Part shown: positions 23,867 through 52,500 of the stretch, in pieces
How positions within the stretch are numbered: position 1 is the stretch's first letter
Layout of the letters: each line of letters starts with the position of its first letter
Source: Mantamonas sphyraenae STR306
Taxonomy: Eukaryota > Protista > CRuMs
NCBI GenBank assembly: GCA_026936335.1
Contig: JAPMXV010000058.1
Coordinates: 299,226 to 363,225, forward strand
Direction of reading: 5' to 3'
DNA: 64,000 nt
Made by a program: the position numbers and the translations under genes
The notes under the pieces: generated by a model
What the model was told of the DNA's origin: nothing
Database searches by the model: none
What the model saw: the letters and a program-made list of their open reading frames with translations, nothing else

Positions 23867-23913
23867 ATCGTGTTTGGTTGTCCGTGACAATGAACATGAT
23901 TGGAGATGAGGGC

Positions 23914-24060
23914 TATTGTATTGGCCACATGGCTGTGCACATGGCCTTCGGCTAGTCGATGCACCACATGGTGCGACAAGGTAGTATGGGTAAGCCTGTG
24001 GATTTGGATCTGTAGGCCGATCATTTGCCTCCTTCGTCGCTTGGTACCCTTTGTCGCTTG
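23914..24060 (-). ncRNA. Putative omegaRNA scaffold of Fanzor A (ends AATACAATA; guide from flanking DNA)
   Basis: 105-nt non-coding tract from stop to element end, with hairpins (GCACC-ACAT-GGTGC, GGCCA..TGGCC, GCCT..AGGC). Terminal 9-mer is shared with element B. The 5' limit is inferred. Confidence 0.45.
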
Positions 24061-27000
24061 GGAGCATGCTGTTGTGGTTGTGACCCACCCGAATCCTCTT
24101 CTTCCCCCACTTCCTCATCTCTTCTCTTCTTGCTTCTCTCGCCTGCCTTGTCTGCTGCCTTGCGTTGCACCTTGATTTTCTTTGTTGGCTTCTCCATCCA
24201 GACGCCCGTGACAAAGAAGAGCATCTGCCGCCAGAAGATGCAGTGTGCAGAGCCTCGATCTCTCTGAACTGCCTGGTGCAAGTTGTGCTCACCCTCGCCC
24301 TCCATCTCTTTGCATGCGTGCCGTTGTGCAAAGCGTTTGAGCTGCTTGGTGGCGTCAAACATGTTGGAGTCGATGTCCGACAGGCAGTGGCTGCTGCACG
24401 TCCGCCATCGCCCAAACTTCTCAGCGCCAAAGTCGTCCAAGTTGTCGACAGCGCTGCCACAGAAGCACTGCTGCGATGTATACCTCTCGTCTGCTGCAAT
24501 GACGACAAAGTGGTTGGCCAGCATCTCCCGCATCTCCTGCGATTTCCCGCGTCCGCCAAACGTCTTTGTCGGCTGCAGCACAATCACCTGCTCCAGGCCC
24601 AGATGCGCGCGGAACTTGTGGATCACGGAGATCATCTCACGCACGCCTGCCATCCTTCGTTTGCGAAACGTTGCGTACTGCGCACGCATGTGCTTCGCAT
24701 CCTTGTGCAAATCTTTTCCGAAGACACGTTGCTTGTACTCCTCCTTGAAGTCCGTGTACGACGCCAGCACTCGGTCCTGCCCTGCCTTGTGTGCCTGCAC
24801 ATCGTGGCTGTCCAGGGGCAAGGTGGCCACATACAGCTGGCCGTTCCGCACAAAGATCGCCTCGACCCAGTCTCGTCCACGACCAGGGTCAATGCTGATC
24901 CACAGCACCTTGCGTGCATGCTCAAGGACTGCGTATCCATTCTTGGCAAAGGCCTTGACCTGCTCGACCAAGCCACGCTTCGGAACGGGGTACTTCGGGA
25001 AACCGGGAGCAATCTTCCGGATCTCGGTCGTCCACGTGTCTGGCATGCCCGTTGGGTTCAGCACGGCAAGGGCAATCAGCGCGTTCTTCTTGGGGTCCAG
25101 CAGAAGGGGCAGGAGATGAGCCATCCTTGGCCTGATCAATGTTGCGAGGCTCGCCGGTGAAGGCAGGAGAGTGTGAACTCTTGGTGGCTGTAACACCAAG
25201 GCTCGCCTGTACTTCCCCTGAGCGGCGATTCCACCAGAGAGCATGCGCATGCTGCTGGCGCTGACGTTCTTCAGCAGGCACCTTGCGTTTTTCGTGCCAA
25301 CGCCGCGCGTGAGCATGAGTATTGACTTCACGGGAACTGTTCGCAGCGGCCGTTTCCCTGCCCAGTGCTTGTTGGGCAGATCCTCGTCACTGTTGTTTTC
25401 TGGCATGCGACGAGCATACCGACACCGATACACTGCCTGCTTGAGCCATTTAGGGAGACTCGGGATGGCCTCATCCGTCAAAACCCACTCGCGTTCTTTC
25501 AGTGCATTCCACCAACCCGGATTGGCGTCCGACTTGGCGTTCGGGTTTGCGTCTGGGGGGTCGTTTGGGTTGGCGTCCGGGTTGGCGTCCGGGTTGGCGT
25601 CCGGGTTGGCGTCCGGGTTGGCGTCCGGGTTGGCGTCCGGGTTGGCGTCCGGGTTGGCGTCCGGGTTGGCGTCTTGGGGGTCATCTGGGTTGGCATTCCC
25701 GTTCGGCTTTCCATGGGCTTTCCACCTTGCTTCCATGGTGTTCACAAAGATCTTAAACGCGTACGTCTTGACGGAGTACGCGCCGAAGACGAACTGGCCG
25801 CCAATGTCAACCGGACCGGGAAACATCGCGTCAACACAGTCCAATGATGCTGCTGTCGATGCAATGGCGCGCTTTGCTTGTGTGCTTTTGAGATTGGTCT
25901 TCAGGTCGGGCTTGAGCATCACATCCAACAGCACAGACAACGCGTCCCGTTTGCCACGCACGTGCTTGCCGAGTTGATCCGAGAGACTTGCGCACACCTC
26001 CTCGTACGGGTCCCATGGAGGTACACCTTGTGAGCGCTGCGCATCCACAGAGAGCTGCGCATCCACGGAGGACTCCTGCACATCCATGGATGACTCCACA
26101 TCCACAGAGGGCAGCACATCCACGGAGGACTCCTGCACATCCATGGATGACTCCACATCCACAGAGGGCAGCACATCCACGGAGGACTCCTGCACATCCA
26201 TGGATGACTCCACATCCACAGAGGGCAGCACATCCACGGAGGACTCCTGCACATCCATGGATGACTCCACATCCACAGAGGGCAGCACATCCATGGAGGA
26301 CTCCTGCACATCCATGGAGGGCCCCTGGACCTCCACTGAAGAGTGAGCAGCAGCCGCGGCAGCAGCCTTTGTGGCCTTGTGGATGGGCTGAGAGAACACA
26401 AAGTCACGTGTGTCCTTTGTCGACACCTGGTGGGTTTGGAACGCCTTCTTGGTCTTTGCATAGCTTGTACGCATGAGCGCGGCGACGCTGGCCACGATGG
26501 CGGACATGGGCAGCTCGCTGGGCGCCCCGTTCCTCATCAGCGCCACGATCATCGGGTAGGCACACAAGGAGATGGCCGACTGCAGGCTGCCATTGAAGGC
26601 ACGAGCGATGTCATTGGCCATGCTCGACACGGGCGCCTCCGAAAGATCCACCTTCAGACGCGTGACCATGAAGGAAAAGTCGAAACCATGTTGACCATCG
26701 CCCGCCTTCTGTATCCCGTTCCTGGTAAATCGTACAGACTTGAGCTCCTCTGGGGTGTCCACGTTCTCCTTGAGTACCTTGAGGTTGTGCGTCGCCACTG
26801 TGCGCAGGGCCGTGAACGCTTCGAGCAGGTAGAAGGGCTTCACGCGGCTGTGATCTTCCACCATCCCGTCGACCACCATCCCGTCAATCATCGTCTGATC
26901 CTCTGTTGGCAGCTCCGCCTCATCCAGCTCCGCCTCATCCAGCTCCCCCTCCTCCTGCTCGTCGCTGCCATCCACCGATTGCTGACGTCCATGGGGCGCA

Positions 27001-30000
27001 GTGAACCATGCAGTTGGGTCCTTTTTCACCTCTGGAATCACCTGGTCGACGAACCATGCTCGAAGCAAGGCTGTTTGCACGAGCATACAGTCCGCCAATG
27101 CTCCAAGCACGTCAGCCTCGCTCTTTCCAAGCCCACGCACGTTCGCCTCCAGCTTCAGATTCTTCTTGAGATCGCTTTGGTACTCAACAAAATCGTGCTC
27201 CCTGATCGCCGTGGCCGAAGGCAGCAGCGTGGCGAAATCAAAACCGTGCGGGATCCACACGGGTCGCCCCCGCTGGCTTCCCTTCACGTCATCCTTGTCA
27301 TAAAAAGCATCCTTGAGCGGCGTCAATGTCTCGCCCTCTGTTGTTGCCCCTGTCTGGAGCGCCACCTCGAATAGGTCCGCACGGGTCGCTGATGATGGGG
27401 TCGCAGGAGGGCGAAGCACTTGGCCATCCTTCCGCAGGAGCACTGCCAGTTGTTTCTCGTGCCGTGCTGTGATCACATGTGGAACAGATGTCCACCTTTT
27501 AACGGCCTCACGGGAACCGAGTGACTCCTCCTTGTTCTTTTTGAAGACAGATGCATCAAAGCCAGCAGGAATCTCCTCCACAAGCTGCTCGATTTCGGCT
27601 TCAGTTGCCGTCAGCAGGTAGGGCACCGCACAGTCCTCCTCGTCCGGCTCCGTGGCGTCCTCCTGGCCCACCATGGCCTTCGCAACATCCTTGTGAATGC
27701 CCTGTGCGAGATGGAATGGCATCTCCTGCACGTGCAGCGTCCCTTCCCGTGCACTGTGGCCACGCCCGAGCTTGTACTCCATATGCATACGGGTGTCATC
27801 GGTGTTCTTCAGCTCTGGCTTGTGGTTGTAGGTGATGTTGACCTCAGTCAAGCCCAATGCTTGTGCCAACTCCTCCACTGAGCGCGGTTTCGGCTTGGCC
27901 TGCGTACACAGTCTGCTGAACGACTCCATCACGGTCTGCGCGCGTTGATGATCGAGACCATGCACTCCTCCAAGCCGCTGGCAGACTGCTTGCGCCAGGG
28001 CGACGGCCGACATCGGACCATGGTCACGTTCGGTCTCCTCCAGACCCACCGTGAGCAGCTGCTGCCTCAGCGCTTTAGTCTCTTCTTCCTTCTTTTCGTC
28101 GTCACTCTTGATCGATGTTTTCCCTCGCGATTTGGTCTTTGTCGTCTTCCCCTTTTTGGGCTTCTTCTTGACTCCCTTGGCCCAGGTTATCAGTTTCCAT
28201 GACGTCGCTTGGGCGTGCACTTTCTTCGTGTCCACCACATGGGCGTTGAAGATGTTGACAACCCGCAGCCCCGGAGCTGACCCATGGAGTGCGAGGCCAG
28301 CCATGAGACGCCCCTCGCGGTGGCACAGAACGATATCGTCCTCGGCCTGGTTTGTGACGAACTCGTCCAGTGACATCGTTGCCACTTGATGGGCAGCAAG
28401 GTAGTCGCGCATCACTGGCGCCAGGGTGGTGACAGTGGCACGAGCGGCGAACGCTCGCTGCTTGGCGTTGGAGAAGGTGTCCTGGGACGCAGCTGCACTC
28501 AGTTGCTGGTAGAAGCGTTGCAGCTCGGCTGGCGTGGCTCGACCTGCAAACAGTGCGGCTGTGGACACGACGTCGTCCACAACCACAACCGTGCGAGTCG
28601 AGAACAGCTTGCTCAATCTGGGCAACACAGTGTCGAGGATCGTGGTGACCCATTGCCAGGCAGAGGTGAACGTGGCGGGATGCGTGATGGTATGGTCGGA
28701 GAGGTGCAAGTAGCGAGCGGCGAGGCTGCTGAGGCCAACGTACACTGCGGCAAGGCGGGTTCCCCCCGACCCAGCGACGCCACGCTGCACACCACCCTCC
28801 ACGCCCTCGTTGACAGCAGAGTCAGCCAAAGGTGGGGGTTGCCAGTTGTCGTTCAACACGTCCAGACACTTTGCGGTCACTGGCGTCTTGTCGCCGGCTG
28901 AAGTCGGAAGCTGTGTCAGCTGCCCTGCTGCCGATGTCTGCGTAGCGGGCACACGGTTGAAACGGAGCCCACGCACAGATGCGGTTGACCCAGCAACCTG
29001 CACCCGAGTCGAAGGGGGCCTTCCTTGAGGCGCTGGCGTTGTCCCTCGAGCCCGTGCAGCGTGCGCGTACAAACGCCTTCCAGCAGCTGAGGTGGAGCTC
29101 TCCTTGCTCTGCATCACAACTCGCGGGCCCCTGATGGCCATGGGCTTGCGGAACACGTTTGATTTGTTGTCGAGAGCCACGGTGCCCATGGCAGACGGCA
29201 ACCGCCACTCCTCTTCCGGTTGAGACTTGAGGAAGACCAGTTTGAAACCCACGGGCGCACGCTCAGGCGCGGGCCACTCCTCGTCAGTCAGCTGCTGCGC
29301 AAGGTCATTGTACACACGGAATTTCCCTTCCGCCAGTGGAAGCCATGCCGTGTAGTGGTCCCCTTTGAAACAGAGCACCCCGAAGGGCACTTGCTGCTCT
29401 TGCTCCTGCAGGCCCTCGCCCTCACGCTGCTGGAGAGCACCTCGCTCCGCAAGCATTGCAACCCCTGCGGCGTCCGCTGGCTGGGGGGTACCACCATGCA
29501 ACATCTGGATGGGGAATCCAGAGTCGAATGCGACCTCGAGGCTGTGATGAAGATCTGCCGAGTCACCCCACAGGTCGTCACCCCCTGCGAGCGCTGTAGC
29601 GGCAAGGAAGAGATCGTTGCAGGCCACGGCATACATGTCGTCGTCACAGAACATGGCCATGCACCAGGTCTGCCGCAGAAGGGCCGTGTTGACGACGCTG
29701 GGGTCTGTGTGTGCCGGCGCAAAGAAGAGGGGGCGGGTTAGCACTCTCCTGTCAGCGGGATTGAGTGCGGTTTGAGCTTACCTTGCTCCCCAGGCTCAGG
29801 CCCCAACTGGGTCGGGTCGTTCCCGCCTGTCGTTGCCTCCAGCCATCCGAGAAGGTACTTGCACATGGACGTTCGCAGAGGTGGAGAGGCGCGCACGGTG
29901 GTGGCATAGGACGACACCCAGCATGCCACCTTCGCGGTGTTGACACCGTTGACGTTGGCGTACCCTTGCATGTCACCTTCGGGCTCGCCCAGATTTGCAG

Positions 30001-30157
30001 GTAGTCTTGTTCGCGGTGTGTACAGGGAAATCGACTCGTTGTCGGCCACACAGGTCGGACACACCAGCGACACGTGAGATGGGGCTGACGTTACCCAGCA
30101 CACCATGAGCACTGTCTCGTTGTTGCAGCTATGGTGCTGACACTTCAGAATCGACAT
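24021..30157 (-). CDS. Giant Fanzor/TnpB-like RuvC nuclease A (~2,019 aa; exons 30157-29782 and 29704-24021)
   Basis: RuvC-I ISIDPG (D 24888-90), RuvC-II ADERYTSQQCFCG (E 24486-88), RWRTCSSHC zinc ribbon, RuvC-III QRDRGSAHCI (D 24258-60). A 77-nt intron (GTAAGC...CTAAC...CACAG) joins the upstream exon in frame. Confidence 0.85.
25567..25673 (-). repeat. 12-bp tandem repeat, about 9 copies, encoding (NPDA)n inside Fanzor A
   Basis: GGGTTGGCGTCC repeated on the + strand. Confidence 0.95.
26042..26320 (-). repeat. 57-bp tandem repeat, about 5 copies, encoding SMDVQESSVDVLPSVDVES inside Fanzor A
   Basis: Near-identical head-to-tail in-frame units with no spacers. Confidence 0.95.
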
Positions 30158-30222
30158 TCTACACTCTTGAAACTATTGACTCCACCCGCGCACTTGGGCC
30201 AGCCGCCGCTTTTCAGAGCAGG

Positions 30223-30990
30223 TCAGTTGTCAAACGCCAAGCCTCGCGCCTCGCTGTCAAATGCCGCAGAAAGCTTGTTGCCCTCTCCGACGCCCCCGAG
30301 CACTTGCACACAGTTCACAAGCCCCATCCTCCACAGCCCTACCCACGTCACTTGCTGCTCTGGAAGGGCCCCGCGCACGCCGTTGCCGACGAGAACATCG
30401 AAACGCACGTTGGCCGTTTGCCGGCACAGAGGGTTGAAATCCTGCAGTTCACACTCACTGAGGAGCACAGTGGCCCATGTAACGATGTTGAGAAACAGAG
30501 GGAACAGAGGCTGGACCTGGACGACCAGGAGGGCGAGGAAGGTGGGGTGCTGAGTTTGCAGGCGTTGCACGTCACAATAGAGTCTCGGCTGTTTTGTACC
30601 TGGCAAACTCAATCCAGCAGGAGATAGATCACCGAGGAGGGGTTGAAAGGTAGGAGGCATGGCCACAACGCCAAGAAAAATTGATGAGTGGCTAGAAGTT
30701 GCCGCGTCGTCGCGCTGCGTCGTCGCCTCTACATGCAAATGTGGGTGTGATGTGCTGTCCCCGTTTTCAATATGCTCCCTGTACGACGCCCGATTGCCCA
30801 CCAAACCGGCAGACGCAGCGCTGGGCACCGCACGGGCAAAGGGTGATGCTTCGTTGCCGTCGCGTGACCAGCAAGTGGCACACGTCCACAGGAACCAAAC
30901 AGAGTCAAGTGGAAAGGCTGTGCGACTACACCAAGACACTACAGCAGGAAGCGCCCCTTGCCGTGGGGCCTTGGCCGTCCTCGACGACAC
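30223..30990 (-). CDS. Possible small accessory ORF or further upstream exon of element A (hypothetical)
   Basis: 255-codon open frame on the element's coding strand; the 3' half has coding-like codon usage; no recognisable motif. Confidence 0.3.
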   Translation of the reverse strand: MSSRTAKAPRQGALPAVVSWCSRTAFPLDSVWFLWTCATCWSRDGNEASPFARAVPSAASAGLVGNRASYREHIENGDSTSHPHLHVEATTQRDDAATSSHSSIFLGVVAMPPTFQPLLGDLSPAGLSLPGTKQPRLYCDVQRLQTQHPTFLALLVVQVQPLFPLFLNIVTWATVLLSECELQDFNPLCRQTANVRFDVLVGNGVRGALPEQQVTWVGLWRMGLVNCVQVLGGVGEGNKLSAAFDSEARGLAFDN

Positions 30991-31472
30991 AAAGAACCGC
31001 CTTGTCAGGCTACGTGAAAATCAGGTTGTGAATCCACGGTATCGGGCTTCACAGGCTGTCTCATGGTGTTTGTAGATACATATTGGGACATGGGTCTGCT
31101 GAGGGGAGACGCATGTGCACAATAATTGTACTGGGTGTGAAGGGGTGCATCTCAACGGCGTCAACCTGCATGCTGCTCCTCCCACGGGTGTTGGAGCCAA
31201 AACCAGAGGACCATGTGGCATGATGACTGTATGCAGGCGTTCCATGGATTGTTTATGCACGGGGCGCATGGTATGTTCGCAAAGCCCGGTTGCAAGGCCG
31301 TCGCTCCTGACTCGGGTGACTGCTGCCAGGGGAGGTGGGCACTATCCACGCCTTGTAGGTGCCCCACTTAGCCCTCCCTGCTTCTCTTTGAGCCCCCCCG
31401 ACACAAAGATGGCATTGGGAGTACGGGTTTTTCAGCACCAGCGTGCGCCCTGAATGGCTACGCTCCACGATC

Positions 31473-32492
31473 CTACATGCGGTACCCGCAGTGATGGACC
31501 CAGTTCCTCACATCAGCAGCCGTAACATGCCCCAATGCAGTACAAATCGCCGCGAATGTGCAAATGTCCACTCGATGAAATTCCCTGCGGAGGACCGCCT
31601 TGAACTTGCTAAACATGAGCTCGATGGGGTTGAGCGTAGGTGTGTAAGGCGGGAGAAACTCGACATCCACCCCATACCAGGTGCACAGCTGGCGTACAGC
31701 ATCGCCTTTGTGGATGGAGCAGTTGTCCATAACCAGAACTGTTTGGCGGCAATCTCGCATGCGGGGCAAGAGGTCTTGCTCCAGGAACTCCATAAACAGC
31801 TGCCGGTTGTATGACCCCTCTCGCATTGTGTACGCTACCAGTGGCGAGCGCCCACCGGTGCTGATGGCCGCCAGCACGCTGATGCGCTTTTGCTTGGGAT
31901 GGTTCTCCACAACGACCGCTGGTTGCCCACGTTTCGCACGACCATATCTCCTGTAGCACACTCTGTTGTTCACTGCAGTTTCGTCCAAGAAGACCACGTT
32001 CGGCGCTCGGAACACACCGCGAATCCTCATTGCTCGAGTAAACTCGCGTGTGCGCGCCACGGTGGATTCCCTGAACCGTTGCTTGGCGATAGCACTCACC
32101 TTCTTGCGAGTCAGTCCCATGCGCGCACAAGAACGGCGAATTGTGGACAGAGATACCACCTTGTTGCGATGAAGAGCAACGGCTACTTGCAACTCGTCCA
32201 GGTACAGTCGCGGATCATCGGCCACCTGTTCAGCAATGAACTGGTCGTCATTGGCATCCAGGAGACGCCTGGACGGTGGTTGGGCCACAAGAGGGCGTAC
32301 ATGGCCCATGGCTCGGTGTTGACGTACAATCTTGGACACGACGGAAGGAGACACACCGAGAGCCTCCGCTGTGCCTCTGCACGAAGGACGCAAGCTGGAT
32401 TGGTAGTGAAAGAGAATGCATTCTCGTTTGTTCGCCGAAAAGGCTTTGCCGTGGATGTATGACCCACCCGTTGCATTCGTTTTGAAGGTCAT
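31473..32492 (-). CDS. IS630/Tc1-mariner DD34E transposase (339 aa)
   Basis: HTH (TAEALGVSPSVVSKI; LYLDEL..VSLSTIRR..GLTRKK); VFLDET, LVMDNCSIH and FLPPYTPTLNPIE, with 34 residues between D2 and E. Intact frame. Confidence 0.95.
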   Translation of the reverse strand: MTFKTNATGGSYIHGKAFSANKRECILFHYQSSLRPSCRGTAEALGVSPSVVSKIVRQHRAMGHVRPLVAQPPSRRLLDANDDQFIAEQVADDPRLYLDELQVAVALHRNKVVSLSTIRRSCARMGLTRKKVSAIAKQRFRESTVARTREFTRAMRIRGVFRAPNVVFLDETAVNNRVCYRRYGRAKRGQPAVVVENHPKQKRISVLAAISTGGRSPLVAYTMREGSYNRQLFMEFLEQDLLPRMRDCRQTVLVMDNCSIHKGDAVRQLCTWYGVDVEFLPPYTPTLNPIELMFSKFKAVLRREFHRVDICTFAAICTALGHVTAADVRNWVHHCGYRM

Positions 32493-32577
32493 TTTTGTTT
32501 TGCGTTGCTGACCACAGCGCGCTGAACGCCACAATACAGGATCATGGGAGGATGGGGGGGGGGGAGGGTGGATACGT

Positions 32578-39008: not shown

Positions 39009-41335
39009 ATGGCAAGGAAGAAGCTGAGGAATGGCGGAGACGGGGACGTCCTGGGAGGTGAGTGGTGGTGTGTGGTGGATAGTGTGTGGTGTGTGTGTGT
39101 GGGGGGGGCGGGGCGTGAGAGGAACGTGGCTGAGATGATGATTGTCGAAGGCATTTGTCTGATGTGCGCCGTGTTCGGTTGTCGAACACGGTTTTAGCCC
39201 TTGACGAGAATCGACAGCTACCAAAACACTGGCTGATCAGCACTGTTCCGTGTGGGGGCGGGAAGGGAAAGGAGGTTGGGGGGTTGATCAGGGTGTGGAG
39301 CCAGCTGACAGTATTCTGTTCTGCTCTAGGATGCACAGATAGATGTGTGGAGTACGGATGGAGAATGGAGGGTGAGGAGTGGGGAGTGGAGAGGTGGGAA
39401 TGGGGACTTGAATGGAAAGTTTGAGTCGAACGAGTCGGAATCATCGTTGTCGCGCGTGTCTTGGTGGACAGGGAAGGCGAGGGTGAGAGGGAAGAGGAGC
39501 CTTGCGGGAGTAGAGGCCGAGGAGGAAGTGGAGGCAGTGTTTTGTGGGAGGGCCACGCGTCGTGGGAGCCAACGAATTCGTTGTGGAGACAGAGGCATGG
39601 ACTCGTCAGCAGCCAAACAAGCGCGCGGGCGCGAACGGGTAGGTTTTTGTAACGGTGGCCAAGGCGTTCACCAGGGAACGGGAGCTGACATGGAGAGAGG
39701 TGTGTATGTTTGGGACACGTGGGATTGCGTGGCATTGGTGTGTGGGCACAGCTTCGGAGGCTGAGGGAAAAGCAGGCGCAGGAGAGCAAGGGGGAAGAGG
39801 CGACTGAGCAAAAGGCGGCTGCGCTGGGAATGCCCGAAACCCCGTCACGGGACGTGTCGTGGACAGCGACAGGGGAGGAGACGCCCCAGAGGATGGGAGC
39901 GAGCCCGGCAGCGAGGAGCATAGGGAGCGAAGCCGGAGTGGTGTCGCTGGCGTCGCTGGACGACTCGCTGGGAGACGCGGAAGAGGAAGCAGAAGCAGAA
40001 GAGAGCCAGACGGCAGCGGGGTTCGTGCAGAATGGACCGGTGAGGGTGGACGGAGGCAACGGGATGGGTATGAACACACAAAACACACTGGAGGGCCTGA
40101 AACTGAACTACGATTACACGACACCTGTGAAACGGGAAGAGCGGGAAGAGAAATCGTCGCAAGAAGAACAAGAGCGTGTGGCTGAGCTGCAGGCAACAGT
40201 GACGAGGCAGGCGGAAGAAATCGAGAGCATGCGGGGAAAGCTGGAGAAGGTGAACCGCGGGGCAAGCGCTGTGCGCGCTTCGGGAGGGGAGCTGCTGCGG
40301 AAGAACAAAGAGCTGCGCGGGCAGGTGGAGGAGCTGGAGCAGCGGCTGAGAGAGGTTCAAGAGGAGCACGGGGCCAAGGACAGGCTGTACAGCGAGGTGC
40401 AGCAGGCGTTGCACAAGCAGCGGCAGGAAAACGAACTGCTGCAGGCAAAGCTAAAGGCAAAGACGCTGAAGCAGCTCGGGGACGAGAAAGCGGGCCTGCT
40501 GTCGAAGTTGAGCGACCAGGAGAGGAGGATAGAGGGACTGGTGAAAGAAGTGGAGGATAGCAAGCACTTTCTGCAACAGGAGTCGAACAAGGTGCTGGAG
40601 CTGTACCAGAAACAGCGTGTGACGGAGGCGCTGGTGGCAGAACGCGAGGCAGAGGTGGAGGCGGCCAAACAGGACATCCGTGTGCTGCAGCAGAAGCTAG
40701 AGGCGGAAATGGCCATGGTGAACGGGTTTGGCAGGGAAAAGCAGACGTTGGTGGGCCAGATCCAGGAAAGCGGGGAGCGAATCGACGCTCTCCTGAAGGA
40801 GTCGCGCGAGTGGAGGCAGAAGTACGAGGCGGAGCAGCAGCAAAGAGTGATGCTGAACGAGCATCTGCGGCACATGGAGCGCATGCGCGACGGGCAGGTG
40901 GAGTTTATGCACGCGCAGCAAGTCAAAGTGGCGAGGCTGCAGAAACGACTGGAGGAGGCCGGTCTGGCAGTGGAGGACGAAGAAGAAGGAGACACGGGGG
41001 AGGACAAGGCGGGCGTGGACAAACAGAGCGAAGGAGAGGGAGATGGAGAGTCGCACGTAAGCGCGACGATCGATTGGGGCAAGGTGGCGGCGCACAAGCA
41101 AAACGGGCACCAGCACGTGGTGGATGTACAGGGTGGCGGAACGGATGGGCTGTCGTTGGGCATGGGTGCCCAACAGGAGGCGGCGGCGGAGGAGGAGGAT
41201 GGAGAGGAAAGTGGGGGAGGGGGCGGGCTCATGGGCTGGATCGGGTGGTTCTTTGGGATTGAAGAGGAAGAGGTGGAAGAAGTGGAGGTGGGTGGACTGC
41301 ACACAATGAGGCGGACACATGATACGATTGTATAG
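39009..41335 (+). CDS. Coiled-coil protein (multi-exon; 5' exons uncertain)
   Basis: Long heptad-rich ORF 39710-41335; upstream GT..AG introns; C-terminal MGWIGWFFG motif. Confidence 0.65.
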
Positions 41336-44300
41336 GTGTTTTCGTTTGAGTGACTCTTTTGTCTTGACCGGCGTGCGTGCCCTCACCCAACACAGAATGG
41401 TTGCCACCACACGCAGTCGTCGGCAGATCCATGGGAAGTACACAGCCGAACTGAGTCCCACGGAGTATGAGGCGGCCGTTCTGTACGAGAGGTACAGGCA
41501 CAGCGATCGCGTGGGATCGCCCCAAGTGCATCCGGATGCCTGGGCCTTCTTGTGCCACTTCACCAGCCACCGGCACCGCAGCCGAGTGGCCATTGCCTCT
41601 GAAGTCCATGCCCGTGTGGTGCTCAAGATCCTGAGGTACAGGCTAAGGGAGCCACGAAAACTGGACGACAACGAACAGCTGCCGCTTGCACAGGCCCTCT
41701 TTGCACTCGTTGCTGGCGTAGGTGTCCTTGACGTGAAGACCAAGGCCTTGTACATGTTTAAACAGCACTCAACCGTGATTCCAACAAAACCAATAGTTAT
41801 GGAGGCGTCCTACTCAGCTCCAGACGTGCGAGACAACCAGGAAGGGCCTGCGTTTGACCTGAAAAAGCTTGTGGAAAATGCAGCCAGCAATGGCAACCTG
41901 TGTCACGCCTCATGCAAATGGTGTCGACAGAGCACAGGAACCCCATCAGAGAACACACCGGAACTCGTCACAAACTACGTGCACACAGGGTACGACCTGA
42001 CGGGGGTAAGCCTGTTGCTGTTGGAGCAAGTGGAGAAGAAATTTGCCAACGACTTCAGTGTCCGCCCCGTGTTCCCCGTGCCTGGCAGCTTCAGCTCCGT
42101 AGCATTCAATGTTACGCGTCGCAAGGATCTTATCTCGCGCCCTGTACTCCGCATGGAAAACACCCTGTCCGAGAGGGAGCTGCATGACATGCGTGGTGGG
42201 GGCGCACGCAATCCGCTGGTCTCCGAGGACACGTCGGCAACGGAGGTGGGTGCCTCTGTAATGTATGTGCTGCACATCGAGAACCTTGTCATGTCCTGCA
42301 TGGCGCGTGTGCACACGACAGCAGAGTCAGCATCGTCGAGCTCATCGCTCCTCCAGCGTGCTGTGGAAGACGTGATGGCTGACGTACGTGACAAGGCGCG
42401 GCGTTGGAACCTGCGTGATGGGGATGTGACTGTGTTCCTGCGTGGTGAAACGCACACAACCATGTCCACGCTGGTCAACCAAACCAACCGCAGAGCGATC
42501 ATCTTCGAGGCCACGCTCGCGCACAAGCACAACGAGACCATGGAGCAGCTGCTGGATACCCTGAGTGCAGCGTGCGAACGCATGGGTTTCAACGTGGAAT
42601 GCTGCGCGAACCCCGTGTCAACCTGTTTGTCCAGGGCCTGCGCGCAAACAACCATCATCCAGAGTCCCCTCAGCGACGGATCTCTGATGCGAGAAGGCGT
42701 TTGGATCCAAGGCGAATCGGAACACACTATCACACGTGACAACCACATCCACAGGCTTGTGGTGGGGTTGTTGTGTGGTTGCTCAACACTTCCCATCACC
42801 CTTTCCACCGTAGGCAAGACGGGCAAGATGTTGGACTGTGTAAGGACGTGGCAATTGCGGGGCGAGCTCGTGGACGCGGAAAAGGCGGTGCGTCTTGCTG
42901 CAAGGTCGGATTCACGGGCAGCGGAAAAGCGGCAGCTCACCGATGAGGTCAACAGGGCGATAGCGGCTGTGGTGGACGACGCGACACTGGAAGAGCTGAA
43001 CGGAATGATGCGTACACCAGCAGTGGGCGCTTCTGTGGGCGCGAGCGACAACGACGATCACCACGACAATCATGAGGAGTCTCAGACACTCTTCGATGCA
43101 TGCCGTTTGATGCCAAGACGAGGGAGTGGTGTTGTGGCCGAGGCAATTTCGGTGGCGGGCGAAGGTTCAAGCGTTGGCGAGGCCATCAGCGCCATCGAGG
43201 AAGCTCTTCAGCAAGAGTGCAAGGAAAGAAAGCCACTGCCACCGGGGAGAACAAGCGTGTTTGTTCGGCGACGTGAGGTACACGGGCAGCGCTTGCGGCT
43301 ATTCGTGGCACGTGACTCCCTTGAGTCAGCGTCAATTCTGCGGGCCATGGGCACCCAGCACGTACGAGATGCAATGACGGAAGCAGGCTTGGATGACTAC
43401 GCCACGGCTGTGGACAAGATGGTGCAGGCAGAGAAGGGTTTGGTCCAGGCGGCGCGAACGGAGGCAAGCACAACCGCGTATGTAAGCAACAAGAAATGGG
43501 ACGCGTTTGTGGACGCCGTGCGCAAGGAGAACAGTGGAATGCCTGTGTCCAAGGCGAACAAGGTGGTGCCTGCGGCCACACTCCAGAAACTAAGGCGGGA
43601 GGCGCCGTCTTCACTGAAATCTCTCAGGATTCCCAAAGACACTACGTGCCTGCGAGTGACGAACGACGACAGTGGCAAGAAGAGCAACACTCGCCATGAT
43701 CCGAGGCCTAGTTTTGGTCCCGACTGGCCAGCAACGCACCAAGAACTCCTCTGCAAACTGCTGATGTGGGTTGGTGACGCCACCGTGACGCACACCGACA
43801 CTATCAGCCACATGACGACAAATTATACCCGCTCTCTTGGAGCAATTCACGAGACGAAGCCTGTTCCAATCCCTCCCAAGATCACTGCGGTGATAGACAA
43901 GTGGAACCATGCGGGGTACGAGGCGCAACGCACCCGAACGATGCTGGATTTGGAGGCCCTGGTTCCAAACCACAACATGGATGTCCAGGCGTGCGTGGAC
44001 TTCCCCGGCATGGTTGAGGCGATGCTTCTCACTCCGCTGCCCGAAGACGTGTGCGGCCGAGTGCAGATCACGGAGGCGCAGGCGGAAGGAAGCACACATT
44101 GGGAGACAACGGCGTTCAAGGCTGGAGCGAAGCGGTTTCAAGAAGACGCAAAGAGGATGCTGCCACACATTGTGTATGCGTTGAGGGAGTTTGCACGGAT
44201 CTACTTCACAGCGGCAGGCCTCGCGTCCACTCGCCGCGAGTGTGATAGGTTGTTTCTGGAGGTGACCAAATTCGAGATCAAGTCAGCACGGCGACACCTG

Positions 44301-46813
44301 CGCCAAGAACACGGTGTGCAGCTGGGAGAGGAGGACGAGGAAGAGGAGGAGGACGAGGACGAGGACGAGGAGGAAGATGAGGAGGACGAGGGGCGGGAAG
44401 AGGAGGACGAGGAGGACGAGGACGAGGACGAGGACACACGGGCGAATCCGAGCGAGCAGAAGGACGAGGAGGCAAAGGCAAAGGCACGTGACCCTGTGGA
44501 AGAATTCCTCGAGCTCACTGCCCCTGAACTGCGTGCGGTCTACCGCCGGCGCAGACCAAGCGATAGACCCGAGCGACCCCAGGTGGAGGATTTGGGTCTG
44601 GACGAAGGCCAGCCATCACGCGCAGCCCTCAAAAACAGGCTGTTGCTGTTCAGCCTGGTGCTGGCAGACGGCGTATTTGGCAAGCGCGGCATTCACGCCG
44701 ACAACACCGACGCCATGTCGCATGCGGTGGCTGTGTGGCTGGTGAGGGCAGCCGGTGGTTCCCAGCGCGCATATCTTCCCACCCCAAAACGCCTGTCCAC
44801 CCCGCAGACGATCATGACCTCCCAAGGTGGTCTAGATATTGCTTTGCTGCCGCTGCTTCATGGAAACGACCGGAAACCTTCCACCGAGGCGCCGGAAAAC
44901 GCTGCACTGTGGGACATGAAGCGCCAGCTCATGGACGACGCGGGCAAACTACCACGGGAGGTACGGCTTGTCCACGCCGCGTCACAGGTGGTGGGTTACC
45001 AGCTAGGCTTGCGGTTGGAGGAGCACGTGAAGAATGCTGTGGTCGAGATCAAGGAGACTGCACTGGCGTCAGCCAAGCAGGAGGGGGAAATGGCCGAGGT
45101 GGACGAGCTGGAAAGTGCGCTATCGGCGCTGAAAACGCGCCCTGCTGCAGAGCCAAATGACACACTGGTGTACCACGATGTTATCAGGGACGTCTTTCTG
45201 GCCCAAGAGGCAAGGAAGAAGAAGACAAAGACGAAGTCGGGAATGCGCGGGCCAAATCCGTTTCTCGCGGTTCAGAGAGCAAACGACGTCATTTTCAAGG
45301 GAGGTGAAGCCCGGATCCACCGGTTCAAGCCTAAACCGTGGGGATATCAGCAGCTGTTCACCCTTCCAGAGACAACACGAGGAGGACGGCGAGTTGGATT
45401 TCCGTGCCAAGAATCTGACGAACCCGTGCCAGCTGTTGCCTTGTTCAATTCCATGGTTCAGTGGGCAGGGGGTGGATCGGGATCAACGTTGGCCTCGCCC
45501 AAGCCCCCGGCCACCATCAGTGCACACCGGCTGTCCAACTTGGGCTGGAATCTATGGCGAAATTTTGGGCACAACTGGATGCCCAAGTTGCAAGCATCGC
45601 TGACAACCCATGCTGGAGACAACATGGCTGCGACCATCGACCGTGTTGTGGGTCTCATCAAGCACTATGCCCCTCCTTCGTCAAAGGAGCTCTCGGTGGC
45701 TTTGAAGGCCCTGGAATTGAATATCGAGATGCAAGATGAGCTGGTTCGCAAATGGGACGACGTGGCGCGTGCAGCTGGCACAGCAACAGGCAAACGCCTC
45801 GCGCTGTCCACATCCTGGCTGCCGCGAACTGAAGAGGCAGGGGCGTCGTCTGCATCATCGTCGTCGTCGTCATCGTCGTCGTCTTCTTCGTCGTCCGACA
45901 CGTCAATGACACGGTGGGCATCGAGTGTTCATGGTCTGTGTGCAGGCTACGACCCAGGTGTGTACCAGCACGTTGGAGCCCTGGTTTACTACTATGAGCG
46001 TGTTTGTGTTTCTCGTTTCGCAGACGTGTGCTGCATTGAGTACGGTCTGGCGTTTGACCTCAAGGGCACCAATGTCCGCTACGAGCAGAGGCGATCGGGC
46101 CATGCAGAGATCTCCAACAAGCTCAGCAAGCTGGGCAAGCAGCTTGCCAACGCTGTGGACGCGGCAAAGAATTCGAAGATCGAGGAGGAGATGAAAGCAT
46201 TGACCGAAAAGTTGAGGCCAATCCAACAGCATATGGCCAAGCTGATCAAACACGGAAGCGCGGCAGTGATGGCTGACCTCCAACGACAGTGCAACCACCG
46301 AATTCACGTCGGATATGGAGCGGCGCCCGTGGTTGCAAGTGTGCCAGTGCGCACTGATGCCGCCCAACTCGCCTGCGTCGCTACGGTGACGATGACTCAC
46401 GAAGCACAGACATCCAAACACTCTGCGTACGACTGTAAAGCCGTTCGAAAGCATGCTTGGAGTGTCGACAAGAACGGGTCACGGAACGATCGGTGGTATG
46501 TGCACGAAGTGGCCACCAAGACGCTGCCGGATGGAGAGGAGTGGGTGGCGCACAAGGATCGCAGTGCTGCCATCAACATGGCCAACAAATGCCATGCAGC
46601 TCGGTGTGGTGGTGTCGAGCTGTGGCTTTTCACATGGGTGTGGAGCGGCAAACGTGCGCATCTACAAGAGGCGGCCCGCCAGGCCATGCATGGTGGACAA
46701 GATGCAGGAAATGGGGGACAAAATGTCCAAGTGGAGTTGTAGATGATTGTTGTGGTGAAATGCTTGTTTAAACTAGCGCTTGTAAGCAGCGCGAGGTGAT
46801 TTGCAAAATACAA
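41333..46813 (+). mobile_element. Element B: non-autonomous insertion carrying a giant Fanzor-like gene (~5.5 kb)
   Basis: TATAG direct repeat at 41331-35 and 46814-18; the 3' end AATACAA|TA is identical to element A. Excision keeps the host stop and leaves a 6-nt gap between convergent stops. Confidence 0.65.
41397..46742 (+). CDS. Giant Fanzor/TnpB-like RuvC nuclease B (~1,781 aa)
   Basis: RuvC-I CAGYDPG (D 45951-53), helical insert, IHVGYG, RuvC-II THEAQTSK (E 46401-03), RuvC-III HKDRSAAINM (D 46557-59). First plausible ATG at 41397. Confidence 0.8.
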   Translation: MVATTRSRRQIHGKYTAELSPTEYEAAVLYERYRHSDRVGSPQVHPDAWAFLCHFTSHRHRSRVAIASEVHARVVLKILRYRLREPRKLDDNEQLPLAQALFALVAGVGVLDVKTKALYMFKQHSTVIPTKPIVMEASYSAPDVRDNQEGPAFDLKKLVENAASNGNLCHASCKWCRQSTGTPSENTPELVTNYVHTGYDLTGVSLLLLEQVEKKFANDFSVRPVFPVPGSFSSVAFNVTRRKDLISRPVLRMENTLSERELHDMRGGGARNPLVSEDTSATEVGASVMYVLHIENLVMSCMARVHTTAESASSSSSLLQRAVEDVMADVRDKARRWNLRDGDVTVFLRGETHTTMSTLVNQTNRRAIIFEATLAHKHNETMEQLLDTLSAACERMGFNVECCANPVSTCLSRACAQTTIIQSPLSDGSLMREGVWIQGESEHTITRDNHIHRLVVGLLCGCSTLPITLSTVGKTGKMLDCVRTWQLRGELVDAEKAVRLAARSDSRAAEKRQLTDEVNRAIAAVVDDATLEELNGMMRTPAVGASVGASDNDDHHDNHEESQTLFDACRLMPRRGSGVVAEAISVAGEGSSVGEAISAIEEALQQECKERKPLPPGRTSVFVRRREVHGQRLRLFVARDSLESASILRAMGTQHVRDAMTEAGLDDYATAVDKMVQAEKGLVQAARTEASTTAYVSNKKWDAFVDAVRKENSGMPVSKANKVVPAATLQKLRREAPSSLKSLRIPKDTTCLRVTNDDSGKKSNTRHDPRPSFGPDWPATHQELLCKLLMWVGDATVTHTDTISHMTTNYTRSLGAIHETKPVPIPPKITAVIDKWNHAGYEAQRTRTMLDLEALVPNHNMDVQACVDFPGMVEAMLLTPLPEDVCGRVQITEAQAEGSTHWETTAFKAGAKRFQEDAKRMLPHIVYALREFARIYFTAAGLASTRRECDRLFLEVTKFEIKSARRHLRQEHGVQLGEEDEEEEEDEDEDEEEDEEDEGREEEDEEDEDEDEDTRANPSEQKDEEAKAKARDPVEEFLELTAPELRAVYRRRRPSDRPERPQVEDLGLDEGQPSRAALKNRLLLFSLVLADGVFGKRGIHADNTDAMSHAVAVWLVRAAGGSQRAYLPTPKRLSTPQTIMTSQGGLDIALLPLLHGNDRKPSTEAPENAALWDMKRQLMDDAGKLPREVRLVHAASQVVGYQLGLRLEEHVKNAVVEIKETALASAKQEGEMAEVDELESALSALKTRPAAEPNDTLVYHDVIRDVFLAQEARKKKTKTKSGMRGPNPFLAVQRANDVIFKGGEARIHRFKPKPWGYQQLFTLPETTRGGRRVGFPCQESDEPVPAVALFNSMVQWAGGGSGSTLASPKPPATISAHRLSNLGWNLWRNFGHNWMPKLQASLTTHAGDNMAATIDRVVGLIKHYAPPSSKELSVALKALELNIEMQDELVRKWDDVARAAGTATGKRLALSTSWLPRTEEAGASSASSSSSSSSSSSSSSDTSMTRWASSVHGLCAGYDPGVYQHVGALVYYYERVCVSRFADVCCIEYGLAFDLKGTNVRYEQRRSGHAEISNKLSKLGKQLANAVDAAKNSKIEEEMKALTEKLRPIQQHMAKLIKHGSAAVMADLQRQCNHRIHVGYGAAPVVASVPVRTDAAQLACVATVTMTHEAQTSKHSAYDCKAVRKHAWSVDKNGSRNDRWYVHEVATKTLPDGEEWVAHKDRSAAINMANKCHAARCGGVELWLFTWVWSGKRAHLQEAARQAMHGGQDAGNGGQNVQVEL

Positions 46814-46815
46814 TA
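46700..46815 (+). ncRNA. Putative omegaRNA scaffold of Fanzor B
   Basis: About 70-nt AT-richer tract after the stop, with a GCGCT..AGCGC hairpin, ending AATACAATA. The 5' limit is inferred. Confidence 0.4.
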
Positions 46816-46824
46816 TAGCGGGGG

Positions 46825-48082
46825 TCAGCGGGCCCACCAGGAGCGTAGCCAACGCCAAATGAAAGGAAGAAAGGCAGGAAGAATCCACAGGACAAATTGG
46901 AGGACCGAGGCGAGCCACGGGTGGTTGACGACGAGAGCAGGGCGAGAAGGACGCACTGCTGTAGATGATGATGATGAAGTTGTGTTGGCGGTCGGGGGCG
47001 GGATCTCTGTGACGACGTCGGAAAAGTTGACGCGGGAGGTGGAATTCGAGCGGACGAGGGGCGCAGGGGGCTGGACAGCCTTTTTGCGTGCCTGACGGCG
47101 TGGTCGGTGGTCGCGGACAGGCTTGGCAGGGGAGGAGGAAGAAGAGGAGGAGGAGGAGGAGGCGAGGTAGGAATGGGCGGGAGGAGGCGAGTCGGAGTCG
47201 GAGTCTGAAAAAGCAAATTGGGAGTCATTGGGCAGGCGAGTGGGAGGAGTAAAGAACTGCTCAGTGGATGTTTGGAGGGTGGCGAGGTCGAGCTTGGGCA
47301 GGGAGTCGACCTGTTCGCTTTCGTCTTCGCTGAAACTAATGACGTCTGCACTGGAGGTGGAGGTGGGGCTTGCGCTTAGCCTGTCGTCACTCGGGAGGGG
47401 AGGAAGGGGTCCGTACTGCTGGCGGTACTGCTGGGCAAAGTCGCGGACGTGGTCCTCGGTGTAGGTGAGGAACATCTCTGCAGAAGACTTTGCGAGGGAG
47501 ATGATAAATATCTCAAAGAGGTAGCCGACGAGAGGCATGTTGAAGGAGACAGTGATGTCGACGGTGATCTCTGTGACGTCGCGGGCGCCAACGGCCTTCT
47601 GCAGAGAGAGGGTGTGAGACGGAGACGGAAAGGGAAGAGGGAAGGGACGAGGGGCAAGGGAGGTGCGGGCACGCACGTACGCTACGGACAACAAAGACGA
47701 GCTTTGCGTTGAAGTAGTTCTCCATAACATCGGGGAAAAAGTCTGCGTGTGTTTCAAAGAGAACATCGTCGTCTGTGTGGAGGGTGTGGGGCGGGAAGCG
47801 GATTTCTTGGACCTCGGTCATGCCGATGTTGCCTGTGCCGACGATGCCGGCGAGAAAGTCTGGAAACGGGACACCGACGGCCTGGAAGCGGGAGGTTCGG
47901 CGCTCGTGGGTGATTGTGTGTGTGTGTGGATCGCGTATGGAGAGCCAGGGGTCGAAGCGCATGTCCACATCCTTGCGGACGTTTGCATGGTAGTCTAGCT
48001 TGAAGGAGTCGTCCTTGCCAAAGTGGAGAAACTCCTCGGGGGAGCACTCGAGGAAGCGCTGGACTTGGTCGTGGCGGACCAT
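46825..48082 (-). CDS. VASt/StART-like lipid-transfer protein with C-terminal TM (1 intron)
   Basis: CSPEEFLHF..DDSF..YH, MTEVQEI, TEITVDITVSFNMPLVGYLFEIFI; hydrophobic tail. Confidence 0.6.
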
Positions 48083-49597: not shown

Positions 49598-52500
49598 TGA
49601 AGGGATGGGAAGGGAATGAATTTGGAAGCGGGCGAAAGTTCGCACACGAGCACGAGGGCAACTGAATTGGAGTTGGTTCACGGTGATGACGGCAAGAAAC
49701 GCTGTTGCGCAGAGAGTGTGGTTGCGTGGATGGAGTGGGAAGGATGCAAGGAGCGGAAAGCCTCTTGCAGGGCGTGTGGTCAAGGTGAGAGGCTGCGTGT
49801 GCACACTTTTTTCACACTTTTCGATGGCAGCGTTTGCGGGTTCTCCCAAGGGGTGCATGCGTTTGTGAAGGGTGTATCTTGTGGGATGGGGTGGGCACGT
49901 TGGTGTGAGAGGGTGAACATGCATGTTTGTGACTGGGAGGGTCGGAGAAGGACGCGATGGGGTGGTGGAGATGCATGTTGGAGCGCGTTTGCGCGCGTTT
50001 TGATTTTGATGCTGCTGTGGCCATGGGGGGACTGTCGATTCACAGCTGGGATACGACAGGGGGAGAGGGAGGGGGAGGGGGTTGGTGGCTCACACACATG
50101 CCGAAGCAGACGTACGCGCAGGTGTTGCTTGTGCTAGTGGTCGTGCTTTGCTCACCAGTTCTCGCCGATTTCACCGTTCTGTGGGGAGGTTCTGCCGCGG
50201 TCATCCCACGAGGAGTTGCCGTGGCTCCCAACGGAGACACCTACGTCACTGGGTACACCACGGGGCAGCTTGATGGCCAGGGGTACGCTGGACAAGATGA
50301 CATTTTCCTGACAAAATTCACGGCAGCAGGCAACAAGGAATGGTCGAGGGCATTCGGCACCATTTACAGTGACGTAGGCGTAGACGTTGCCGTGTCATCC
50401 TCTGGCGAGGTCTACGTCACCGGAACCGTAGAAGGCTCGTTGCATGGCCAGCCGTATTCTGGCGCGAACTCGGACGCGGTTCTGATCAAGATGACTGGAT
50501 CAGGTGACAGGGTGTGGACAAAACAATGGGGTTCCAGCAGGCGCGACAGCGGAAACAGTGTGGCCGTGTCGTCCAGTGGAGACGTCTTTGTCGCAGGGGA
50601 GACAAACGGCGACATTGATGGGCAGACGCCGACCAACCTTTACAACATGTTTCTGACCAGAGTGAACGCAACTGGAAGTATCCTGTGGACCAAGGTCTTG
50701 GCAACCTCAGAGTCTGATTTCGCGTTTGGCGTGGCAGTGTCGGGTGCGTACATTTACATGACAGGTTACACGAACGCCGTTTTGGATGGACAGACGAGTG
50801 CAGGTGACTGGGACGTTGTTCTCTCCAAATGGAATGCGACAGGGCACTTGGTGTGGGCAAAGCAATGGGGAACCAGCTCAAGGGATTTTGGTCATGGCGT
50901 TGCGGTGTCGTCCGCAGGGGACATTTACGTCGCTGGAACCACCTCTGGGAACTTCACGGGGTTCACAAATCAAGGCGGGGATGACATCTTTCTGTCAAAG
51001 GTGGATGGAAGTGGCAATATGGTATGGACGACGCAGCTGGGCAGCTCTTTATCCGAGAACGTGGGTGGGGTTGCTGTGTCACCCGCAGGCGAAATCTTTG
51101 TGGCTGGTCAGACGGGCGGAGCACTTGACGGACAAGCCAACTTGGGCGGCAATGACTTTTACCTGAGCGGATGGAGCGCAACTGGGAGCAAACTCTGGAC
51201 GAAACAGTGGGGAACAAACGAGTCAGATTCCGGGACCGGGATGGCGATCTCACCAACAGGGCAAGCACTTGTTGTCGGTACCACCCGTGGCCATCTTGGG
51301 AGCGCTTTGATAGGCGAATCGGATGCTGCCCTGAGCAATGTCAAGCTCGTCGCCAACTGCTCGTACGTGCCGGGAACGTTTGAACGTACAGTTTACATGC
51401 CCCCCAGTCCATTCGACACTGGCAAGGTGGACTGTCCCTTGTGTCCCATTTTCACATTCAGCAATGCACCAGGAATGAGCACGTGCTACACGTGCATCGA
51501 AGGCAACGCCAACTTCGCTCCGGGGTCGGACAGCTGCAACGCCACATTCCCGTTCACCGTCTCTGTATCACCGTTGGTGACACCAAACACAGGTGGGACG
51601 GTGGTGGACATTCGTGGGGCAAATCTCAACAGCACCACGGTCGCTGTGTGGCGAGCTGAAGATGGGACGCGGCGTACAGGATCGTGCACGACGCTGAGCA
51701 CAACCCGACTGAACTGCACCACACCGGCGTTTCCGAAGCTAGAGAACGTCAGTGTGATCATTGAGACGGACCAGGCGTCGCCTCTGTATGTGGCACCGAC
51801 GATGGAGGTGTTCTCGAGCACGTTTACGTCGTTTGCACCTCTGAGCGGGCCGAGCACAGGAGGCACGACGGTGGTGGTACACACAGAGCGGATGGCAGTG
51901 AGGGCGCCGGAGCTGGCACGGTGTCGGTTTGGAACGCAGGTGCAGTGGGCGAGCGAAGTGTCGTCGTCGACGATGAAGTGCAACACGCCAGGCGGGGTGG
52001 GAACAGGGGAGGTGGATGTGTCTGTGGATGGGCAACAGTGGTACAGGGTTGCGGGGGGAGCGTTCACGTCGTACACGAGCACAGTGACAACAGTGTCGCC
52101 CGGGTCGGGGCTGACCACAGGTGGCACAGAGGTCAGGGTGACCGGAACGGGAATTGTGAACGGAAGAGATGTGCCTGTGGTGACGATTGATCCAAACGGG
52201 GTGACGGAGAGCACGAAAGTGGCGGGGGTGTTTACAGAGGGCGGGAGCACGATTGCGATCACGACGCCGGCGTTTGGCACGCCAGCGCTGGCCCAGGGGG
52301 CGGTGCTGGACTCCACGGTGAAGGTTGCGCCGAACGGGATGCAGGATCTACCCACAAGTGTGGGCTTTTTGCTGTACGAGGCACATGGACTGCAGGGTGT
52401 GACGCCATCGACGGCACCTGTGTCGACGGCAGGGATCAGTTTGTCGCTGTCACCGGATGCAGGGAAGACGTTTGGGAACACTGGCAACGAGATTCGGATG

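Follow-up and report, generated by a model that had tools for sequence, protein, structure and literature searches.

Two sites in the window (the whole 64,000-nt stretch of DNA analysed) that share a short terminal motif are best explained, with good confidence, as the right ends of two Fanzor1-type OMEGA transposons of the IS630/Tc1-mariner group. Each element ends at ACAA, and its insertion duplicates a TN dinucleotide, usually directly after a G. Each site marks the 3′ boundary of a DNA transposon that is present in multiple copies in this eukaryote, where a tract conserved among copies gives way to a flank that varies, an arrangement expected of a Fanzor1 element, and the DNA directly past the motif is likely to serve as guide. 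Following characterised Fanzor1s, a transcript of the conserved tract would read through the duplication into the flank to give an RNA with a scaffold ending in ACAA-U-(N) and a 14–15-nt guide. The resulting ribonucleoprotein would cut the empty site left by excision, where the left flank and the duplication together would form the TAM (approximately TGTN for element A). At filled sites, the element's own A replaces the G before TN, which suggests self-protection, and such sites would be spared. Repair from the sister chromatid or the homologue would then restore the element (restorative homing). The host, Mantamonas sphyraenae, is a CRuMs flagellate (PMC10492846), and a literature search found no paper that joins "Fanzor" with "Mantamonas". 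Genome-wide searches covered one assembly (25,061,354 bases, 78 contigs), in which the labels A–E and H are used for families of elements with a giant ORF; A and B are represented in the window, and C, D, E and H are additional families found in the genome.

Elements A and B and their right ends

Element A (23916–32534, minus strand; 8,619 bp; approximately 10 copies) is an autonomous IS630/Tc1-mariner transposon with the ends TTGT...ACAA. Its DD34E transposase (31473–32492, minus strand; approximately 339 aa counted from its first ATG within the element) has an N-terminal HTH and 34 residues between the second D and the E of the catalytic triad, and is matched by Pfam DDE_3 (E 6e-27) and by the NCBIfam IS630 model (128.6 bits, cut-off of 100). 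The TIRs are imperfect and bipartite (TTGT-N12-GCTGTG, 15/26 identical). Copy comparison places the right TA of the target-site duplication at 23914–23915 (minus strand), and the flanks of 10 A sites place the left TG and left TA, a predicted TAM of the form (T)GT(N), at 32535–32538 (minus strand). Two A copies (L071 and L072, contigs C17 and C41) have an identical left flank and different right flanks, which suggests recombination between copies or segmental duplication. In some A copies (L007, L008, L009 and L010), one or two additional tandem units of approximately 140 nt at the 3′ end of the ORF lengthen its basic, NLS-like tail and leave the scaffold untouched. Further IS630-type transposase subfamilies, approximately 46% identical to that of A, are present on contigs C44 (two sites), C11, C43, C59 and C46.

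Element B (41333–46813, plus strand; 5,481 bp; approximately nine copies in three subfamilies) is non-autonomous. It has no transposase, and its left end matches that of the autonomous family E, which encodes its own, second transposase (46–47% identical to that of A). Unable to move itself, B would depend on a transposase supplied in trans, most likely that of family E. Flank reading places the left TG and left TA at 41329–41332 (plus strand); this junction can alternatively be read as a 5-bp duplication (41331–41335) next to a trimmed left end, which leaves the empty site unchanged. The TIR identity of B is only 9/26, with a left end that starts CAGG or TAGG and a right end of ACAA. A domain search found no match to an HUH Rep transposase or helicase family, and a Helitron, Replitron or retro-type origin was rejected because the left end belongs to an IS630-type family. 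Contigs from four DNA runs showed no empty allele of B, although contigs cannot prove absence. At the left junction, the terminal TAG of a host coiled-coil ORF (39710–41335) spans positions 41333–41335, so that the insertion leaves the stop intact. Downstream of B, the window also carries a tandem pair of genes for large SBBP/TIG/TRP-like membrane proteins (49957–60864, plus strand).

The original prediction started from a 9-mer, AATACAATA, common to the ends of A and B. This 9-mer is present exactly twice in the window (23914–23922, minus strand, and 46807–46815, plus strand), each time just 3′ of a very long ORF, compared to an expectation of 0.01; none of 100 shuffles reached two. The distances given from stop codon to end (105 nt for A and 71 nt for B, counted to ACAA) and the flank sequences quoted for both elements are likewise correct. 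The junction had been drawn between AATACAA and TA, and this is the true transposon end: the dinucleotide that follows is the target-site duplication. Conservation does stop sharply, as anticipated, but one base earlier than the end of the 9-mer. Among 10 A copies and nine B copies, each with a different flank, DNA identity ends at query positions 786–787 (A) and 713–716 (B), and Illumina contigs of other B copies have loose ends at 46814 and diverge from the reference beyond it. The terminal base of the 9-mer is A in 6/10 A copies and in 2/6 copies of subfamilies B1 and B2, as it is the variable second base of the TN duplication. In 28 tabulated copies from four families, the first base after ACAA is always T, and the second is A (11), G (11), T (4) or C (2). 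The 9-mer is not invariant even inside B, where one B1 copy ends AAAACAA and B3 copies end ACAG-T or ACAA-C (the last hyphen marking the element end). The conserved motif is ACAA-T(N), not the 9-mer; ACAA-T is the only part common to the ends across families and is also found in C, D and H, while the right end of family E is GGAA-T. Four extra matches to a 12-nt A end pattern lack any further similarity and look like chance.

Whether the A and B ends agree beyond ACAAT by coincidence is an even question. The sequence before ACAA is different in families C, D and H, BLAST finds no similarity between the A and B proteins, their movers appear to be different transposases, and the ninth base is added only because both window copies happen to carry TA. 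Against coincidence, three additional identical bases are expected in approximately 1 of 64 cases for a single pair, and the scaffold ends of A and B may share ancestry. For A, C and D, part of the conservation has another source. The motif GTGCACAGY-N12-ACAA is found at both ends of C and D and at the right ends of A (38 matches, control 4) and is therefore a bipartite TIR, of which ACAA is the outer part; conservation in these families is thus by itself no proof of an RNA end. In B, the ACAA of the right end has no mirror at the left end, which favours constraint from an RNA scaffold. C and D have too little room for a transposase and are probably mobilised by that of A, with which they have one TIR type in common despite a differing preference at position −2.

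Giant Fanzor-like proteins

The ORF of A (24021–29744, minus strand) is a 1,907-codon open frame whose true start is uncertain and which may have an intron near it, and that of B (41397–46742, plus strand) encodes 1,781 aa when read from its first ATG within the element, in an open frame (41319–46742, plus strand) that starts outside the element. Upstream of both ends, these ORFs carry a RuvC triad in the Fanzor layout (a DPG motif, an E directly preceding the zinc finger, and RD or KD), for which the published Fanzor1 arrangement served as reference (PMC10711439, PMC13565253). In A, the triad is formed by D1619 (DPG), E1753 and D1829, with an RD motif; in B, it is formed by D1519 (DPG), E1669 and D1721. 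The RuvC residues are invariant within families A and B, and the triads are intact in each family read. Between the E and the RD, A has a C4 zinc finger (TNB) with a weak Pfam match to Cas12f1-like_TNB (E 0.036) and with four Cys residues that are invariant in A, C and D. A C4 zinc finger is absent from B, which has only one Cys, plus His residues, in this region. B is predicted to be Fanzor1-like in its working but atypical.

The giant proteins are too divergent for sequence searches, which came back blank or nearly so: direct comparison of A with B gave no similarity, a homologue search of 5.8 billion proteins returned none among characterised Fanzors, a search of 1.8 billion representatives returned only two weak fragments, and a PDB sequence search gave only noise. 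For the C-termini of both A and B, the nearest neighbours in language-model embeddings (0.92–0.95) are TNB/DUF8286 clusters from giant viruses, Mucoromycota and green algae. A low-confidence structure model (pLDDT 50) adopts an RNase H/RuvC fold; its top matches include Cas12j, CasPi and TnpB at Z scores of 6.5–8, a value that lies within the range of common arrangements and is not decisive. For the N-terminal approximately 1,500 aa, a Pfam search gave no match and the single-sequence fold was unusable (pLDDT 36); the sequence read for C and D covered regions other than their N-terminal halves. By eye, degenerate PIN/XPG-like motifs can be seen at 28200–28800 (minus strand) and 42200–42900 (plus strand), and a protease-like His box is visible near 29300 in ORF A. 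PIN/XPG-like or protease N-terminal domains were rejected as visual resemblance, the Pfam search being blank and folding giving no support. An A-type mariner on contig C29 (L097) has a transposase at 71045–72043 and a 1,824-codon ORF within 74000–79500 that starts like Fanzor A; in place of RuvC it has, by eye, an XPG/FEN1-like end (EAD...VVAEDSDD), for which Pfam gave no match. This element suggests that the nuclease cargo is swappable.

Target-site duplications and trimmed left ends

Both ends were read in 33 copies (10 of A, nine of B, eight of C, four of D and two of E), a set that leaves out the ends of families F and G and of three further C or D copies. An intact left end with a matched 2-bp duplication is observed in 17/33 copies. 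These duplications are TA (8), TG (6), TT (2) and TC (1), and with nine non-TA cases the elements depart from the strict TA duplication of IS630/Tc1/mariner transposons and use TN. Three of the 33 copies have a mismatched duplication despite an intact left end, and 13 have a trimmed left end or a longer duplication. The right end is precise in all 33 copies, and the left end is often trimmed. In seven of the 33 copies, a trimmed left end is accompanied by an 8–14-bp duplication at the target: one of A (contig C57, 14 bp), two of B (C21, 12 bp; C58, 11 bp), two of C (C52, 8–10 bp; C34, 9 bp), one of D (C30, 8 bp) and one of E (C2, 8 bp). Each starts at or beside the target T and adjoins a left end that has lost between a few and approximately 65 nt, with microhomology or filler frequent at the junction. 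Duplications of at least 8 bp were found by script in 4/28 copies, compared to 0.13% of mismatched flank pairs, and the three others were found by inspection; the 12-bp duplication of B is also present in independent Illumina contigs. Chimeric sequence is observed on contig C57 (approximately 42,050–42,100, L074), where a C-type end fragment, microhomology, a 14-bp duplication and a full A-type left end follow one another.

One account of the long duplications, only a little short of even likelihood, is one-ended transposition. One-ended events are known for DDE transposases. In such an event, the right end is joined at the T and the left end fails; the host then processes the site by nicking, fill-in and end joining, which leaves a duplication of a few bases and a trimmed left end. 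This account explains the small left truncations, the fillers and the microhomologies equally well and requires no homologous template. It does not by itself explain why the failure always falls on the left, with 0/33 right ends damaged, although selection for an intact omegaRNA could create such a bias. Also against it, Helitron2 elements that carry a Fanzor show the same one-sided pattern with an unrelated HUH transposase, and siblings that lack Fanzor hardly show it, an observation for which Bao and Jurka left the cause open (PMC3627910). That the pattern recurs with a DDE transposase as mover implicates what the systems have in common, Fanzor, a role that Craig regarded as highly tentative for the Helitron duplications (PMC10288648).

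The long duplications with trimmed left ends could thus be scars of Fanzor cutting and repair, a reading that is possible and not yet probable because one-ended transposition followed by host repair fits about equally. To produce such a scar, Fanzor would cut the empty site 14–21 nt past the TAM, repair synthesis would enter from the right flank and copy the element, and the new strand would join the untrimmed protospacer stub via microhomology. The 8–14-bp duplications would then be imperfect outcomes of homing repair, and all of them are shorter than the Fanzor1 cut distance of 14–21 nt (PMC10432273).

Predicted scaffolds, guides and TAMs, and relation to known systems

The predicted omegaRNA scaffold of A, including the TA of the duplication, spans 23914–24020 (minus strand), a stop-to-end tract conserved among copies, and the predicted guide consists of approximately 15 nt of unique host flank (23899–23913, minus strand; its start may be 23914). 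For B, the predicted scaffold with the right TA (46814–46815) spans 46743–46815 (plus strand) and may begin inside the ORF, and the predicted guide lies in the flank past the element (46816–46830, plus strand; its start may be 46815). In both elements, copies agree over the 70–105 nt that separate the stop from the end, but not in the flank beyond. Hairpins had been claimed for both tracts. They are present, including a terminal 9-bp hairpin in A that holds the TIR motif GTGCACAGC within its arm and loop, but folding is no better than that of shuffles (z of −1.5 for A and approximately 0 for B). The B tract contains one conserved stem-loop with a single pair change, and no Rfam family matched the scaffold tracts.

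In characterised Fanzor1s, the 3′ duplication lies inside the scaffold, the guide begins after it, and the RNA extends approximately 15 nt past it (PMC10711439, PMC13565253); native guides are approximately 14–15 nt long (PMC10432273). The predicted guides fit this rule to within 1 nt. The register originally proposed, with guides starting at 23913 and 46816, is retained, while the proposed length of 20 nt is shortened to approximately 14–15 nt. Because the second base of the TN duplication is free, the guide could begin 1 nt upstream; a register in which the invariant U closes the scaffold and the guide begins at 23914 (A) or 46815 (B), or in which the T is encoded by the element, is considered rather unlikely. 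It is favoured by the variable second base in the 28 tabulated copies and by two long-duplication copies (B on contig C58 and E on contig C2) that have the T on the right only. In contrast, the scaffold takes in the entire 3′ duplication in solved Fanzor1 complexes (PMC13565253, PMC10711439), the GtFz1 TAM ends in N, indicating that a free last base is tolerated (PMC10432273), and the predicted closing stem of B and D can pair through both bases of the duplication.

The left flanks support a TAM prediction. A G precedes the duplication in 19/22 sites, including 10/10 A sites, which parallels SpuFz1, where the TAM (CATA) includes the 5′ duplication, preceded by CA (PMC10432273). A T precedes this G in 8/10 A sites and in 1/12 C and D sites (Fisher p 0.0015, post hoc); for C and D, the predicted TAM is approximately GGTN. 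The assembly contains no second perfect site for guide A or guide B, and matches with two mismatches are at approximately the control level; the target would therefore be the element's own empty site. That the motif is a transposase end only (TIR plus target T), with degenerate giant ORFs as cargo, no functional omegaRNA and meaningless "guides", is unlikely: the shared TIR at left and right ends in the A, C and D families, the weak scaffold folding and the A-type element whose ORF resembles A at the N-terminus but lacks a Fanzor C-terminus are in its favour, but it is opposed by the intact RuvC triads, by right ends that stay precise where left ends are trimmed, by the unmirrored ACAA of B and by the one-sided G preference.

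That an omegaRNA reads through the transposon end into the flank, taken as a known rule in the original prediction, agrees with published Fanzor1 data, and because this rule was already known, the core of that prediction is an application of established biology. What is new here is the giant proteins, the TN duplication, the deep lineage and possible in vivo scars. Taken together, and tentatively, these features could represent a radiation of giant (1,600–1,900 aa) Fanzor1 proteins on mariner-type transposons, with family-specific TAMs that can be read from the flanks and with scars of Fanzor cutting and homing in the native host. The exact scaffold, guide and TAM predictions concern Fanzor-like proteins of approximately three times the usual size in a deep-branching lineage, and the relaxed TN duplication offers a test of where the scaffold ends and the guide starts. 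If true, homing scars in the native host would also explain the variable duplications in Chlamydomonas Fanzor elements, open since 2013. As the junction pattern is common to unrelated Fanzor-Helitrons, the role of Fanzor in a native host becomes testable from sequence and a simple assay.

Among known systems, SpuFz1 on Spu-1 of Spizellomyces punctatus (PMC10432273, PMC3627910) is similar in having a TIR element with a 2-bp duplication, a TAM that can be predicted from bases conserved 5′ of the left end, and a tract of approximately 75–105 nt from stop to right end followed by a variable flank as guide. The Mantamonas systems differ in their proteins, which are approximately three times longer (1,600–1,900 aa compared to 633 aa; the mean for Fanzors is 620 aa, PMC10530073) and have no detectable sequence similarity, in their duplication of TN instead of TA and in their short, bipartite TIRs. 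With the Tc1/mariner Fanzor1 elements PGv-1 and PUl-1/PUl-4 (PMC3627910), they share a mariner-type transposase upstream of Fanzor, non-autonomous Fanzor-only partners with common ends, and exchangeable 3′ cargo. However, those elements are all flanked by TA, whereas the Mantamonas elements have a relaxed TN and frequent long duplications, and several divergent giant families coexist within one 25-Mb genome. The Chlamydomonas reinhardtii Fanzor-Helitron2 elements CRe-1/2/3 likewise have intact 3′ ends and 5′ truncation (PMC3627910; PMC10288648), and their variable 7–19-bp duplications directly after the target motif, with occasional filler, resemble those of the Mantamonas copies; the mover is a Helitron (HUH) there and a DDE transposase in Mantamonas, where truncations are mostly shorter than 12 nt. 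Finally, a right-flank guide that targets the empty donor site through a left-flank TAM is the arrangement of restorative homing by IS605/IS607 TnpB, for which experiments are confined to bacteria according to a review that also places Fanzor cleavage only in vitro and in heterologous settings (PMC13565253).
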